Counted from the stretch's first letter, positions 4,891 through 16,605 are shown. The stretch is 64,000 nt of DNA from NC_010811.2, one strand, 5' to 3'. The notes: generated from the letters alone by a model not told the origin. Made by a program: numbers and translations.

Positions 4891-5175
4891 ATGGCCACTG
4901 ATGACTTGCAGACGCGGCAGGCCGCGTTCGCGAAGACCTTCAACCTGTCGCTTGACGACTACCTGTTCATCGTCAGCAACAACTCGCTGGAAACGATCAC
5001 CACGCTGTTGGAACTGCTCCGGCCCCAGACGTTCCGTTCGCCGATTCGTGAGAACGCAGCAGCCAAGCTGCGTCGGTGGCTGGACAACAAGCTGGTAAGC
5101 ACGCCGCCCCTGACCCGTGCTGAGTTGGAGTCGCTGACTCCTTCTTGGCCCATCACATGGAAGCTACCCACATGA
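4891..5175 (+). CDS. Hypothetical protein
   Basis: SD GGAGGGAG then ATG 4891. Confidence 0.6.
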   Translation: MATDDLQTRQAAFAKTFNLSLDDYLFIVSNNSLETITTLLELLRPQTFRSPIRENAAAKLRRWLDNKLVSTPPLTRAELESLTPSWPITWKLPT

Positions 5176-5399
5176 CCATCGTCATCGTCAAGGGCAAGGG
5201 GCGCGCCACTGCGCACGCCTCGAAACCTGCACCCATCACCATGGACTTCACCAAGGTGAAGAACCACCCGATCCAGAGCTTCGCTGTGGACCACGCGGTG
5301 GCGAACGGGTTGCTGCCGACCGAAGAGCAGACTGTGACTTGTCTGCAATGCGGCGCACAGGCTCCGGCCTCCAACCCGATCCCGCCCTGCGGCCACTAA
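5172..5399 (+). CDS. Small protein with C-terminal Zn-ribbon-like motif
   Basis: ATGA overlap; CLQC...PPCGH. Confidence 0.55.
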   Translation: MTIVIVKGKGRATAHASKPAPITMDFTKVKNHPIQSFAVDHAVANGLLPTEEQTVTCLQCGAQAPASNPIPPCGH

Positions 5400-5513
5400 C
5401 TACAAGGAGTGTGCTGTGAAAGGTCTGTACGTCGTAACTTATTTCGCCGTAGCTGCATTCGTCGCATACTCCGCTTGTCTCTCCATCGCAATTCTGTCAA
5501 CGCTATAGCCATC

Positions 5514-5837
5514 ATGACGCAACAAACACTCGACCCCACATCCATCCTCTCGATGAGCAGCGCCGATTCGCTGGAATATCGGCGCGAGCCGAAGTCGTTC
5601 CGCGATGATCCGCCGACCCGTGAGGAAGCGGAAGCTGGCATCGTGGACTACAGCACGAGCGGCCTGTACATCAGCAAGGCCATGCGCGAGCTGGACGAAG
5701 CGATCCCCGGCGGGCAGGCGCAGCGTGCCGCAGCCGCCTTCCATCTGCTGGAAGCAGCGGTTCCCATGCTGCGTGCGTATCTCATGGCGCGTGGGGTTTT
5801 GAAGCATCCGGCCGAAACTACGGCTCCCGGCGTCTGA
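5514..5837 (+). CDS. Hypothetical protein
   Basis: ATG 5514 inside ORF 5409..5837. Confidence 0.55.
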   Translation: MTQQTLDPTSILSMSSADSLEYRREPKSFRDDPPTREEAEAGIVDYSTSGLYISKAMRELDEAIPGGQAQRAAAAFHLLEAAVPMLRAYLMARGVLKHPAETTAPGV

Positions 5838-5838
5838 C

Positions 5839-6210
5839 ATGCTTCGCCACCGGAACGTGAAGGGACCGCTCACGCGGTCAGTAGTACAGCGCAGTGAAGT
5901 ACCCGTCGATGTGCGGACAGTCTTCGTACAACAAGACGGCTTGCAATTCTACGTTTCGGTGGGCCGACTGTATAGCGCCTCGTTTCTAGACTTCGAGGCG
6001 TACACGGTCACCTACCACGGCACCGAAACGTTGGTGTTCACCATCGCACCGCACCAGGATCATTGGACGGTGTTGCTGCCTCACGGTGTGGTGAATCGTC
6101 ATGGCGGCGCCGTACAACGCTTCATGTCGCTGCGTATCCAACAGCCTACGGCGCAAGACGCATTTGTTTCGCTCACGGAGTACGTCCGCAGGACTCGCAT
6201 CCTGTTCTAA
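5839..6210 (+). CDS. Hypothetical protein
   Basis: 123-aa ORF abutting upstream stop. Confidence 0.55.
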   Translation: MLRHRNVKGPLTRSVVQRSEVPVDVRTVFVQQDGLQFYVSVGRLYSASFLDFEAYTVTYHGTETLVFTIAPHQDHWTVLLPHGVVNRHGGAVQRFMSLRIQQPTAQDAFVSLTEYVRRTRILF

Positions 6211-6236
6211 CACAGTCTCAACCCACAGAGGTTCAC

Positions 6237-6590
6237 ATGACCACAACCAACATCAACGAGAAGTTCTCCGCCCTGTTTCGCGCCGAAGTGAAGCGCGTGC
6301 GCAAGGCGCGCCGCCTGAAGCAGGAAGACGTCGCCCGCATGGGTGGCCTGAGCCGCGAAGCGTATCTGCGCTTCGAGAATGGCACGAGTGACATGCGCAT
6401 CTCGTCCCTGGACGCGGTGCTCAAGGGTTTGGGCGTGGAGATGGAGTTCTATCTTCTGGCTACTGGTGAGGCCCCGGCACCCACGACCAGCGTTGCGATC
6501 GGCAACATGGCTCAGTCTTTGAGCAATGAACCGCCGCACGCCGGACCGGGATCTGGCGAGCGCAGCACGGGGCTCAGCGATGCCGACTAA
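6237..6590 (+). CDS. XRE-family helix-turn-helix regulator
   Basis: VKRVRKARRLKQEDVARMGGLSREAYLRFENG.SDMRISSLDAVLKGLG matches the HTH_3 pattern. Confidence 0.88.
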   Translation: MTTTNINEKFSALFRAEVKRVRKARRLKQEDVARMGGLSREAYLRFENGTSDMRISSLDAVLKGLGVEMEFYLLATGEAPAPTTSVAIGNMAQSLSNEPPHAGPGSGERSTGLSDAD

Positions 6591-6783
6591 CAACGAGGCG
6601 GAAGCCCTCTGCCATCTGCGTGCGCTGGTCGCCCTCATCGACCACGACTTCAACCTGACGTGCGGCGCATTCCTGTTGGACCTGAGCCCTGAGGCAGTAG
6701 TCGCTCTTGGGCCGCTGGACCGCACCGCGCATGCAGCAGCCACGTTCCTACGTTCGCTGCCAAACCCGGCCCTCAGTCGCTAA
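6580..6783 (+). CDS. Hypothetical protein
   Basis: Overlapping ATG, 67 aa. Confidence 0.5.
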   Translation: MPTNNEAEALCHLRALVALIDHDFNLTCGAFLLDLSPEAVVALGPLDRTAHAAATFLRSLPNPALSR

Positions 6784-12214: not shown

Positions 12215-12694
12215 GTGGATCACTTCCAGAAAGAGCTACAGCAGATCCGCGACGGTATCGACGAGCGCATCCGCGAATTCGGCCACACGTTCGTAGGCGT
12301 CTTTCCCACGGCGGAGGACCCCACCCCGGTCACGCCCTTCATGTACACGGTGGGACTCACCGCGAAGGGCTGGCCCGAGATCATCGCCACCGGCAATCTG
12401 TCGGTGCGTGCGATGCAGTGGTGTCTTGGGGCAGTTGTCAGCACCATGGAGAAGGAGGGCGCTGACTTCCGTACCGGCATCCGCCACGATCTGTTCAACT
12501 TCAAGTGCGAGCTGCGCTGGGTCACAAGCGAAGAGCTGCGCATGGAATACGCGGTGCACGCTACCCGCTTGTATGGCGACAACGTGCGAGTGCTGCAACT
12601 GGTCTGGACCGACGATCAGAACCGATTACCGGACGAACCGGGCTATGACGCTCAGCGCTTCATTCAGCAGGTGTTCCCTGCCACTGACCAATGA
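12215..12694 (+). CDS. DUF4262-like protein
   Basis: GHTFVGVF...PFMYTVGLTAKGWPEIIATG...VLQLVWTDDQNRLP pattern. Confidence 0.75.
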   Translation: MDHFQKELQQIRDGIDERIREFGHTFVGVFPTAEDPTPVTPFMYTVGLTAKGWPEIIATGNLSVRAMQWCLGAVVSTMEKEGADFRTGIRHDLFNFKCELRWVTSEELRMEYAVHATRLYGDNVRVLQLVWTDDQNRLPDEPGYDAQRFIQQVFPATDQ

Positions 12695-13103: not shown

Positions 13104-13236
13104 TGGATCTCGACGACCTGACCTTTGTTCCTGGCTTTGTGCTGGGCATTGTTATCGGACTAGCCGCTGGTCTCCTGCTTTGCGGCTACCACGCAATCAC
13201 TACCTTCTAACCCAAAGACACCCAACGAGGTTACTC

Positions 13237-14217
13237 ATGGACGGCATCATTCGCAAACTCACCCGTGGCGCATACGACATCCAGCAACTGCGCATCGCAA
13301 CCGGACTGCGCGTCGTTGCACAATTCCGCGATCGGTTCAACGTGCCGGAACCCGTGACCGACGTGCAACTGGATCATGCAACGACGGGCGAAGCGCGTGC
13401 GGCACTCGACGCCGAGGCCAAGGAAAAGGCGGACAAGCAACGCGACGCCCTGCTCAAGCAGATCCGCATTCACTTCGACCGCGTGACCGATGGCATCGTT
13501 GCCACCCAACGCCGCAAGACCTATCACTTCGACGACGTGTTCAAGGACGAGACCGACGTGTGGTTCATGGAGAACTACATGGGGATTCTGGACCAGGAAC
13601 AGCAGGCGTTCAAGCGTCTGGAGCGCGCACTTGGCAAGAACGGCTTCTACAATGACTGGCTGGCGAACGTCAAGGGCATCGGCCCGGCGATGGCTGGCGT
13701 TCTCATCTCGGAACTCGATCCGTACCGCGCCAAGTACCCGTCCAGCTTCTGGAAGTACTCGGGGCTGGATGTGGTGACGGTCGTCGATCCCGAAACGCAT
13801 GACATCGTCCGCACCGAGGGGCGCCGCAACTTCAAGCATCACCTCGTGGAGTCCACATACACGGACCGCGATGGCAAGGAACAGACGAAGATGGGGCTGT
13901 CGTACAACCCATGGCTCAAGACCAAGCTGCTCGCGGTGATGGCACCCTCCTTCCTCAAGTGCTCGCACCCGGTCTACAGCAAGATGTACTACGACTACAA
14001 GCTCCGCCAGTTGAATCGGCCCGAGCTCAAGGACAACAAGGCGGTGAAGGCCATCGCCCACAAGCGCGCACTGCGCTACGTGGCCAAGATGTTCCTGCGC
14101 GATCTGCATACGGCATGGCGCACGTATGAGGGGCTGGAAGTCTATCCGTCGTACGAGGAAGCGAAGCTGGGCATGACCCACGGTCGCGATCCTTCGGCTG
14201 AAGCCGCACGTCAGTAA
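13237..14217 (+). CDS. tasA: IS110/Nop-domain RNA-binding protein, TasA-like (no RuvC or HNH domain seen)
   Basis: 326 aa; N-terminal helical region (LRIATGLR), WLANVKGIGPAMAGVLISEL HhH-like motif, SSFWKYSGLDV, YNPWLKTKL, YYDYK, AHKRALRYVAKMFLRDL; no DEDD domain and no PxxxxSG catalytic-Ser loop; directly upstream of a dual-repeat array. Confidence 0.8.
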   Translation: MDGIIRKLTRGAYDIQQLRIATGLRVVAQFRDRFNVPEPVTDVQLDHATTGEARAALDAEAKEKADKQRDALLKQIRIHFDRVTDGIVATQRRKTYHFDDVFKDETDVWFMENYMGILDQEQQAFKRLERALGKNGFYNDWLANVKGIGPAMAGVLISELDPYRAKYPSSFWKYSGLDVVTVVDPETHDIVRTEGRRNFKHHLVESTYTDRDGKEQTKMGLSYNPWLKTKLLAVMAPSFLKCSHPVYSKMYYDYKLRQLNRPELKDNKAVKAIAHKRALRYVAKMFLRDLHTAWRTYEGLEVYPSYEEAKLGMTHGRDPSAEAARQ

Positions 14218-14225
14218 AGCAAGAA

Positions 14226-14245
14226 CAGGGACCTTCGGGTCCCTG
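14226..14245 (+). terminator. cUUCGg hairpin between tas gene and array (terminator or processing/stabilising stem)
   Basis: CAGGGACC-TTCG-GGTCCCTG, perfect 8-bp stem, no U-tract after it. Confidence 0.6.
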
Positions 14246-14257
14246 CCAAACAGGAGA

Positions 14258-15578
14258 AGTCATCCTACGATAAATAGCGCACCAGAAGCGCAAAGACTCC
14301 CCTATAGCGGTGGTGTACCCTGTGAACTAAGACAACCATTGCTAGGTAGTGAGTCAATATCATACAGTCATCCTATAGATGAGAGCGCATCATTGTGCTA
14401 AAGACACCCATACTCAGTGAGTGATCGAGCCACAGAAGTCCTCCTTGGCAGGAGAGTGATCCTATGGAACAAAGAAACCCGAGATCATAGAGTGTGCCTC
14501 TTGAAATGTAGTCACCCTATAAAAGCGAGCGACCTCAGAGATAAAGTCACCCCAATAGTTGTAGTGTGCCCGCAGTAGCAAGTCACCCAAGTCCGATCCT
14601 AGCGACTCTTCTACGAAAGCAACCCATCGCAGCTTAGTGTTCCTTCCAATGGCAGTCATCCAGTATCATAGAGTGCACCCGTCCGCCGTGAGCCCGCCGT
14701 AATAGCGCAGTGCATACCTAAAAAGCTAAGTCACCCTGAGAGATGCTAGTGAGCCACGAACCGGAGACACCCGATATAGTACAGCGCTCCACGAATATGG
14801 AGGCATCCAACCAAGAGTAGTGACCCAAACGCAAGATTCATCCCAGAGACACAAGTGCTCCATGTGCGCGAAAGTAACCCCAAAGAAGGGAGAGCACCTG
14901 ACTGACCTAGTCACCCCTTAGTACACAGTGTTCCTTTGTAGTCAAGTCCTCCAGAAACAAGGAGTGAGTCCGTAAACTGCTAGACATCCATTAACGCAAA
15001 GTGTGTCATCATGGGGGGAGTCAGCCACAGAGCAGTAGCGAGCCTACAAAACTAAGACACCCAGAAAAGTGAAGCGCGCCGCATCAGGCTAGTCACCCTT
15101 AGAATTGAAGTGCACCTAGGATACGAAGACGCCCCATATCAGCTAGTGCGCCACCCGAATGAAGGCATCCTCCCTTGTTTAGCGGCCCTATGACGTAAGG
15201 CACCCTCATCATGCCAGCGGCCTTGTAAGATGAGACACCCGTTTCACATGAGTGAACCGACCGGTATAAGGCAACCTCGGTATGCCAGTGACCCGAGAAC
15301 CAAAGACAACCGATCCCCTCTAGTGCGTCCACCCGAAATAGAACACCCGAGCCACGAGCGCTCCGTTCAAGATTAGTCACCCGTTATTGCCAAGAGCACC
15401 AGAACAATCCAGCCTCCCGTTACACAGGAGTGAGCCCTCATGTCAGAGTCAGCCATAAAGGCATAGTGACCCGCGTTCTCAAGTCCCCCAATCTACATGA
15501 GTGACCCTTAGTTCCAAGACCTCCTTAACTCTTGAGTGTGCCTGTTGCAGTGAGCAATCCCATTGTATGCAGCGTGCC
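14258..15578 (+). ncRNA. TIGR-like dual-repeat guide-RNA array, 37 units of about 36 nt
   Basis: Repeat A (AGTCACCC/AGACACCC/AGTCATCC type) starts at 14258, 14294, 14330, 14366, 14402 ... 15553; repeat B (AGTGAGCC/AGCGCACC/AGTGTGCC type) at 14276, 14312, 14348 ... 15571; mean A-to-A period 1295/36 = 36.0 nt; spacers 9-12 nt (mostly 10), apparently unique; no credible ORF. Confidence 0.88.
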
Positions 15579-15642
15579 CTGACGTCTCCTCTCGAAAGCA
15601 AGCTACGCAGCCTTCACATCTAACCAGAACCTGGAGCAGTAA

Positions 15643-16605
15643 ATGACTGTTGAATACCTCATCCCTCGTTCCCTTACGTACGTGGAACGCGACTGCCAAC
15701 CGCTGGGACTGGCACGTGCGCTCAAAGCGCTGTCTCATGAATTCGATCCGCCAACAGCGCGTATCGCCGACGAGAATGCGAGTCGGCTTGCCGCAGAGCT
15801 TGGCTTCTTTGAGATGAAGGAGCCTACGCCGTCTGCGCGACTCGACTGCATCCGTTTGATGCGCGAGCGCGTGGCTGTCTATCTCAAGAAGCGCTTCGAG
15901 CATCTGATGCCTGAGCCCATGTGCGCCACTTACGACTGGGCAGCGGACATGGAACTCGTACTGATGCGGTCTTACAAGCCTGAGATTGGCCGCTGCACAC
16001 CCATGGCGCGCACGGTCAACATGAGCGTGTTGGAAGTGGAAGAGAAGGAAGCCTTGGCGGCGCCTCGTCCTCCGCTTGTGTCGGGCATCAACTCCACGTT
16101 TCAGCCTCTGACGAAGAAGGCATATACACGCTCGCAGTACGCACACGGCGACTGTCGTGTAGCCGAGGTGTTGAATGACGTGCGTGCCTGCATTCCGATC
16201 CCTGACATTCAGTTCTTCATCGTCGTGCGCACAGTGCAGACTGCCGACGTTCTTGCCTGGGCGTGCACCCAGTTCATGCCAGATGAGTTGGTACTCACTC
16301 TTACGGGCACGACCAGCTCCGACGAGCGGCAGCGTTCCATCGAGGCATTCAACAATGGGCACTGCAAAGTGCTGATCGCCACGTTCCACATGCTTCAGGG
16401 CTTTCGCTTTGCAAAGCGGCCAGCGATAGCGGTAAGCTCCACGGCTCCCTGCTACGAAGAAGACGCAAATCAGATCCTCGGCCGGCTGAACGCAGATACG
16501 CCGGTGGTCCACACCAACTTGGCAGTGTGGCGCATCCACACCAACTTGGCAGTGTGGCGCATCCAGGACCACGAAGACCGCCAACACTGTGCACAGGAGG
16601 ACTGA
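15643..16605 (+). CDS. Protein with an isolated SF2 helicase C-terminal (RecA2-like) domain
   Basis: LTGTTSSDERQRSIEAFNNGHCKVLIATFHMLQGF...QILGRLN; no Walker A/DEAD half seen. Confidence 0.65.
   Translation: MTVEYLIPRSLTYVERDCQPLGLARALKALSHEFDPPTARIADENASRLAAELGFFEMKEPTPSARLDCIRLMRERVAVYLKKRFEHLMPEPMCATYDWAADMELVLMRSYKPEIGRCTPMARTVNMSVLEVEEKEALAAPRPPLVSGINSTFQPLTKKAYTRSQYAHGDCRVAEVLNDVRACIPIPDIQFFIVVRTVQTADVLAWACTQFMPDELVLTLTGTTSSDERQRSIEAFNNGHCKVLIATFHMLQGFRFAKRPAIAVSSTAPCYEEDANQILGRLNADTPVVHTNLAVWRIHTNLAVWRIQDHEDRQHCAQED
16508..16565 (+). repeat. Perfect 27-nt tandem duplication (HTNLAVWRI x2)
   Basis: TCCACACCAACTTGGCAGTGTGGCGCA at 16508 and 16535, then TCCA. Confidence 0.9.

Follow-up and report, generated by a model that had tools for sequence, protein, structure and literature searches.

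The 1.3-kb repeat field of Ralstonia phage phiRSL1 is very probably a 37-unit dual-repeat TIGR guide-RNA array of the published type, serving the TasA-type ORF034 located upstream. The window, i.e. the whole 64,000-nt stretch that was analysed, corresponds to the first 64 kb of this 231-kb jumbo phage, and its coordinates are those of the genome. The array lies inside a 1.4-kb gap without annotation (14218–15642), between ORF034 and ORF035:

13237 to 14217, + strand: ORF034, annotated as a 'transposase' from 13180, here the predicted tas gene (TasA-type, Nop-domain, without nuclease domain)
14258 to 15578, + strand: putative dual-repeat array of the TIGR type, in which loop repeats (A, AGNCAYCC) and edge repeats (B, AGYGNNCC) alternate, 37 of each
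15643 to 16605: ORF035, helicase-C-like protein, downstream of the array gap

A protein search combined with contig look-ups provided four related arrays (L002 to L005), located beside Tas homologues 59–73% identical, on contigs of 38–254 kb. These contigs are of jumbo-phage size, and their arrays display the same grammar with 37 to about 193 repeats, none of the 74 phiRSL1 spacers having anything in common with theirs. A scan of viral contigs for Tas relatives returned none. As for their extent, L005 (5274–8754, identical in L006) holds 193 repeats, or about 96 units, over 3.5 kb, while the arrays of L004 and L002 span 5088–6592 and 5008–6420, respectively.

No paper linking phiRSL1 or jumbo phages to TIGR was found in the literature searched. 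By name, accession and peptide, phiRSL1 was not among the listed entries of the Faure 2025 supplement, and an earlier listing is possible. This jumbo phage is in culture and well studied, and its host is tractable; carrying what would be an unannotated 37-guide TasA system, it would offer a natural phage-host pair for testing the native role of a nuclease-less TIGR-TasA.

Repeat grammar and ends of the array

The array was segmented by dynamic programming on motif and spacing, the repeat list of the first-pass annotation being left out, and 74 repeats were recovered from 14258 to 15578. At position 4, 32 of the 37 odd (A) repeats carry C and the other five A, whereas 36 of the 37 even (B) repeats carry G; G2 and C7 hardly vary in either type. 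The 73 half-periods are distributed over 17 nt (11), 18 nt (54), 19 nt (6) and 20 nt (2), and the full periods range from 35 to 39 nt with a mean of 35.97 nt. Autocorrelation maxima were found at lags 18, 36, 54, 72 and so on. The motif AGNNNNCC occurs 63 times in 14240–15578, as compared with 7.3 ± 2.5 (maximum 17) in shuffled sequences, and its density reaches 47 per kb in the array vs. 3.1 per kb elsewhere in the window, a 15-fold difference.

The spacers are mostly 10 nt long and delimit 37 predicted tigRNA units, 33 of which measure 36 nt. All 74 are unique, no pair of units being more than 67% identical. Several of the 17-nt half-periods correspond to 7-nt edges (e.g. AGTGACC), and positions 5–6 of the B repeats are almost unconstrained. 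The array was not reported by Tandem Repeats Finder, because its inner bases and spacers are too variable, and no Rfam family matched it at a permissive threshold. Dual-repeat TIGR arrays are described as made of two short repeats (8–12 nt), spacers of about 9–12 nt and a unit of about 36 nt, each repeat type opening 5' with box D (NG) and closing 3' with box C (CC or CCN) (Faure et al. 2025). The phiRSL1 array has this organisation, with two alternating repeat types, 17–20-nt half-periods, a tandem unit of about 36 nt, AG at the start of 71 of the 74 repeats and CC at the end of 65. A CRISPR array was ruled out, as the array consists of two 8-nt repeat types with 10-nt spacers rather than of a single repeat of about 25–40 nt.

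The distance from A to B is 18 nt in 33 of 37 cases vs. 21 of 36 from B to A (Fisher P = 0.003). A length-tolerant edge could be read into this asymmetry, but it is absent in the relatives (P = 0.48) and was given little weight.

Concerning the two extremities of the array, the following features were recorded:

14226 to 14245, + strand: leader hairpin CAGGGACC-TTCG-GGTCCCTG, perfect, separating the array from the tas stop codon
14244 to 14247, + strand: 5'-truncated edge TGCC, predicted to provide unit 1 with its box C and closing G
14244 to 14279, + strand: predicted tigRNA unit 1 (TGCC, spacer A, AGTCATCC, spacer B, AGCG)
15539 to 15574, + strand: predicted tigRNA unit 37, the last one (TGCC, spacer A, AGCAATCC, spacer B, AGCG)
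15571 to 15578, + strand: terminal full edge AGCGTGCC

The unit boundaries were set by homology to tigRNA5 of SpTasH (AGCCA...AAGCG). At the 5' end, the B-like remnant TCCCTGCC (14240–14247) stands 18 nt ahead of the first A and overlaps the 3' arm of the leader hairpin, which runs into the first half-edge. The TGCC half-edge is located exactly 10 nt 5' of the first loop repeat, and its G forms a pair with C3 of AGCG, the first full edge (14276). Published TIGR arrays begin with such a 5'-truncated edge (PMC12045711). Besides phiRSL1, three relatives have a half-edge ending in CC 10–11 nt before the first A, in some cases within the region of the tas stop codon, and none was seen in L005. At the other end, all five arrays finish on a B repeat or on a 3'-truncated AGCG. 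In L002 and L005, the final edge (AGCG or AGCGTGCC) is followed by a terminator hairpin. Neither an intrinsic terminator nor a sigma-70-like promoter was detected between tas and the phiRSL1 array or 3' of it.

A GC-rich hairpin between the tas stop and the first half-edge also occurs in Salicola phage CGphi29 (L008, 15331–15348) and in L004 (at about 5044–5068), the loop being UUCG in both phiRSL1 and CGphi29. No such hairpin occurs in L002, L003 or L005, whose arrays begin at the stop codon or within it. This leader hairpin may protect the 5' end or mark a processing boundary.

The grammar observed in the first-pass annotation was recovered in every element, namely AG at the start of almost all of the 74 repeats and CC at the end of most, the C/G switch at position 4, the half-periods of 17–20 nt with a mean full period of about 36 nt, the closure of the array on a B repeat at 15571 and the B-like remnant one half-period before the first A. 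Its suggestion that adjacent repeats pair through GTCAC and GTGAC did not hold: GTCAC is found in seven A repeats and GTGAC in four B repeats, these are never neighbours, and the complementarity between adjacent repeats equals that of shuffled partners.

Tas protein and comparison with published systems

The tas stop codon lies 40 nt upstream of the first repeat, so that the array adjoins a Nop-domain Tas gene. Against PDB sequences (phmmer), ORF034 matched TaTasR (9mty, E = 7.6e-11) as well as TasH (21kl) and others (E = 7e-4). Pfam returned weak Transposase_20 and HHH matches, and neither HNH nor RuvC was found in ORF034 with this database. The protein starts at a conserved YDIQxLRIATG coiled-coil helix, and nothing in it corresponds to the HNH segment at the N-terminus of SpTasH. 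By these sequence features, ORF034 belongs to the TasA subtype, i.e. the nuclease-less Tas proteins.

The annotated start of ORF034 (TTG 13180) is probably 19 codons too far upstream, the true one being ATG 13237 (MDGIIRKL...). The starts of the homologues align with M13237, and a metagenomic relative about 95% identical carries 1-nt indels at 13214 and 13236, which would cause frameshifts if 13180–13236 were coding. In SpTasH, pre-tigRNA is cut by a Tyr/His dyad formed by Y289 and H296 (PMC13421893). Such a dyad characterises dual-repeat systems and lies on the C-terminal loop of the Nop domain. When numbered from M13237, Y306 of ORF034 is invariant in the clade and aligned to the catalytic Y289, while H315, which is at least 90% conserved in the clade, stands two residues off the H296 column. 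The processing dyad is, as far as this alignment indicates, represented in ORF034 by Y306 and H315.

The identity of the two repeat types was addressed with guides of known sequence. SpTasH tigRNA5 reads AGCCA, CACGGCCU, AAGACAACCA, ACCGGAAC and AAGCG (Faure 2025, PMC12045711, Tables S1 and S3), from which it follows that the Sp loop is AGACAACC (C4) and the Sp edge AGCG^AGCC (G4, cut after G4). In TaTasR tigRNA1, the edge is UGCG^AGCCA and the loop UGAAACCCA (PMC12045711), and FpTIGR is made of AGTAACCC alternating with AGTGTACC, box C being given as CCN (PMC12045711). Both AGACAACC and AGCGAGCC are found verbatim in the phiRSL1 array. When position weight matrices for edge and loop were built from the Sp array (L008), 31 of the 37 phiRSL1 B repeats scored as edge and 33 of the 37 A repeats as loop. 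By homology, the A and B repeats of phiRSL1 are therefore assigned to the published loop and edge classes, respectively, and B is the predicted edge.

Among the known systems, SpTIGR-TasH of Salicola phage CGphi29 (PMC12045711) resembles that of phiRSL1 in being phage-encoded, with a 36-nt unit and an array directly 3' of tas. Its loop AGACAACC and edge AGCGAGCC are the two motifs shared verbatim, a UUCG hairpin separates the tas stop from an edge truncated at its 5' end, an edge closes the array and the Tyr of the Y/H pair aligns. In contrast, SpTasH has an N-terminal HNH nuclease, which the phiRSL1 Tas lacks, and SpTIGR comprises 11 units with near-invariant repeats, a conserved A on both sides of the repeats (hence 8-nt spacers) and a terminator; in phiRSL1 the units number 37, the variable stretches measure 10 nt, the inner bases of the repeats drift and the terminator is missing. 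FpTIGR-TasA of Flavonifractor plautii (Faure et al. 2025) shares with phiRSL1 a nuclease-less TasA with the same N-terminal coiled-coil start, repeats of the AG....CC(N) form, G4 in the edge (AGTGTACC), a variable loop and an 8+10+8+10 = 36-nt unit. It differs by being bacterial and by having A rather than C at position 4 of the loop (AGTAACCC), as in L005. Finally, TaTIGR-TasR (Thermoproteota, cryo-EM 9MTY) has the same edge cut after G4 (UGCG^AGCCA), and the closing pairs G2:C7 and C3:G6 that join its tigRNA ends are those recovered in the phiRSL1 set; its box D is UG instead of AG, its box C is CCA, its spacers are of 9 nt and it carries a RuvC nuclease.

As a whole, the array grammar is ordinary, since it reproduces the motifs of SpTIGR and FpTIGR. 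The first-pass annotation had suggested that a difference in boundary motifs might point to a distinct subtype; AG...CC(N) with a G4 edge being the SpTIGR/FpTIGR grammar, there is no evidence for one. The comparison with published motifs that it had proposed places B in the edge class and A in the loop class. Of the relatives, L005 has A at position 4 of its loop, as in FpTIGR, and its box D is often AA, paired with U7 of the partner half-edge.

Closing-pair covariation

Within the arrays, the B repeats vary at position 6 and at position 3 (T or C), which makes the pairing partners of these bases testable. Position 6 of B(i) was compared with position 3 of B(i+1), i.e. nucleotides 2 and 35 of one predicted guide. 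In phiRSL1, 21 of 34 units pair, as compared with a shuffle mean of 16.2 ± 1.5 (P = 0.002), and 27 of 37 when the 3' half of B is anchored 10 nt before the next A. In the relatives, where the first-pass annotation had recommended a covariation analysis, the proportion is far higher: 36 of 38 units in L002, 11 of 11 in L003, 33 of 35 in L004 and 90 of 92 in L005 (170 of 176 in total), nearly all of the 6:3' pairs being strict A-T or G-C. The controls remained at chance in all five arrays, whether positions 3 and 6 were paired inside the same B repeat (a possibility rejected on that ground), the comparison was made in the wrong direction, or A repeats were considered within themselves and between neighbours.

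An unbiased scan of all column pairs in B-A-B windows placed 6:39 at the top in each of three relatives (z = 17.6, 14.1 and 50.1). In the pooled scan it again came first (z = 52.8), followed by 7:38 (C:G, U:G, U:A), and only 6:3' and 7:2' covary among unit positions. Wobble U.G pairs account for 40 of 138 cases at 7:2'; as they would be A.C on the other strand, the + strand is the predicted RNA strand.

The strong signal comes from the relatives, with Tas 59–73% identical, while that of phiRSL1 itself is modest. In the fixed alignment of phiRSL1, 13 of 34 units mismatch at the closing pair. Units 7, 12, 13, 16 and 20 fail under either alignment, four of them with U:U and unit 13 being degraded, and among the 18 units with strict 18+18 spacing the 6:3' pair falls outside the top six by mutual information.

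On the evidence of covariation, the predicted closing pairs 6:3' and 7:2' are shown to join the two ends of one unit, and they are the pairs seen in the TaTasR structure. A covarying pair between the tigRNA ends, supplied by the edge beyond the box C/D pair, is described by Faure et al. (2025), and such a pair is found here. The unit-specific closing pair within one array is a modest new point. In FpTIGR, the edge is near-invariant, so that its T3:A6 pair is not assignable to one repeat or to neighbours. Here the inner bases vary within the array, and sequence alone therefore places the closing pair between guide ends and not within a repeat. This placement in turn fixes the edge/loop assignment and the unit boundaries independently of RNA data. 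It offers an edge/loop test that would be applicable to any variable TIGR array.

A unit-specific closing pair that covaries between unit ends is also the topology of stem-loop tigRNAs (PMC12045711), and stem-loop arrays (e.g. PlTasA) have units closed by their own end pairing, which varies from unit to unit. Together with the almost free positions 5–6 of the phiRSL1 B repeats, this would suit a minimal stem-loop-type or intermediate TIGR array, with units set by their own terminal pairing and possibly matured by a host nuclease. Such an array is nonetheless unlikely. The closure amounts to about 2 bp, restricted to 6:3' and 7:2', whereas stem-loop arrays have extended palindromic stems; the dual-repeat unit is fixed at 36 nt (33 of 37 units) rather than variable in length; every B has kept AGYG and CC; and ORF034 contains the Y/H loop, the dyad being reported as conserved in dual-repeat systems and absent from stem-loop ones (Xu et al. 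2026 preprint). The array was for these reasons kept out of the stem-loop class and retained as a dual-repeat array.

Relatives, unit turnover and predicted guides

Beside the four distant relatives, tas and array sequences about 95% identical to those of phiRSL1 are present on activated-sludge and soil metagenome contigs. In one of them, exactly 72 nt (two units) are missing, with an unambiguous joint at 15361/15434 which connects position 5 of one B repeat to position 6 of another. The same contig is longer by 144 nt (four units) at the B repeat close to 15110, and carries about 540 nt in place of the 50 nt that phiRSL1 has past 15578. The whole-unit gains and losses in near-identical relatives and the lack of shared guides in distant ones imply a fast turnover of guides, which extends to the 3' boundary of the array. 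As for individual cases, the 144 extra nt at about 15110 (15108–15116) were seen in three metagenomic runs and the 72-nt loss in one, and the 50-nt trailer past the last edge (15578–15629) is replaced by about 540 nt in X1 and by 8 nt in X4.

The covariation, present in B only, and the deletion joint both bear on the assignment of the repeats. The opposite assignment, in which A (AGNCAYCC) would be the cut edge and B the loop, could draw on the slightly better inner conservation of A in phiRSL1 (C4, A5), on FpTIGR, where the edge is the better-conserved repeat, and on the fact that the first full repeat of the phiRSL1 array is an A. It is very improbable: in the mapped Sp and Ta tigRNAs the cut falls in the repeat with G4, no covariation is seen for A repeats, either within themselves or between neighbours, a half-B precedes the first A while no 3'-truncated A follows the last B, all five arrays finish on B, and the 72-nt deletion joint falls in B. 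The view that B is the edge and A the loop, already put forward in the first-pass annotation, is supported by four independent lines, namely homology, array ends, deletion joint and covariation.

With B as edge and A as loop, the following scheme can be proposed. The + strand would be transcribed, probably together with tas, and Tas protomers would bind the box-D-like AG at the 5' end and the box-C-like CC at the 3' end of the repeats. The B repeat (AGYG^NNCC) would be cut after G4, most likely by the Y306/H315 loop of Tas, as suggested by homology, and the A repeat (AGNCAYCC) would join spacer A to spacer B in one guide. The predicted products are tigRNAs of about 36 nt, arranged as 5'-NNCC, spacer A (10 nt), AGNCAYCC, spacer B (10 nt) and AGYG-3', their ends being held by a two-base-pair closure between N6 and Y3' and between C7 and G2'. 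A B 'repeat' would then be the junction of two independent half-repeats belonging to neighbouring guides, which would account for the drift at B positions 3 and 6. Positions 5–6 of B vary freely, and the drift of the A repeats is left unexplained by such a junction.

The two spacers of a guide would pair with opposite strands of a DNA target. As ORF034 lacks a nuclease domain, binding or repression would be a likelier outcome than cleavage, by analogy with published TasA work. Self-targets were searched in the 231-kb phiRSL1 genome with spacer A and the reverse complement of spacer B (9+9 nt, gaps of 0–3, at most 2–3 mismatches), and none was found above the level of shuffled guides.

A decaying or non-functional minisatellite-like relic beside an IS110-like gene, from which no guide RNAs would be made, is hardly credible, for although the repeats are degenerate (9 of 74 without a CC end, unit 13 badly degraded), U:U occupies the closing position in four to five units and no terminator or promoter was detected, four related contigs, jumbo-phage-sized and with wholly different spacers, preserve the grammar, base-pair covariation is maintained, the 36-nt phase is held over 1.3 kb and the Tas gene is intact with its conserved processing residues.

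A further reading of the turnover, tentative and on balance doubtful, is that each 36-nt guide of this jumbo-phage clade is an autonomous module with its own closing pair (A-U or G-C), and that the arrays grow and shrink by modules bounded at the edge cut site. New guides would in that case enter from mid-edge to mid-edge, for instance as derivatives of processed tigRNAs, and a first handle would be gained on how TIGR arrays acquire guides.

Two exact spacer duplicates were observed near the 3' end of the L004 array (6405/6513 and 6495/6567), one in a spacer-A slot and the other in a spacer-B slot, each with a different partner spacer, which suggests that half-guides may be reused independently. 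Elsewhere in the window, ORF035 contains a perfect 27-bp tandem duplication (16508–16565) that is single-copy in three metagenomic relatives, and ORF030 (12215–12694), two genes 5' of tas, codes for a DUF4262-domain protein (Pfam E = 8.6e-21).
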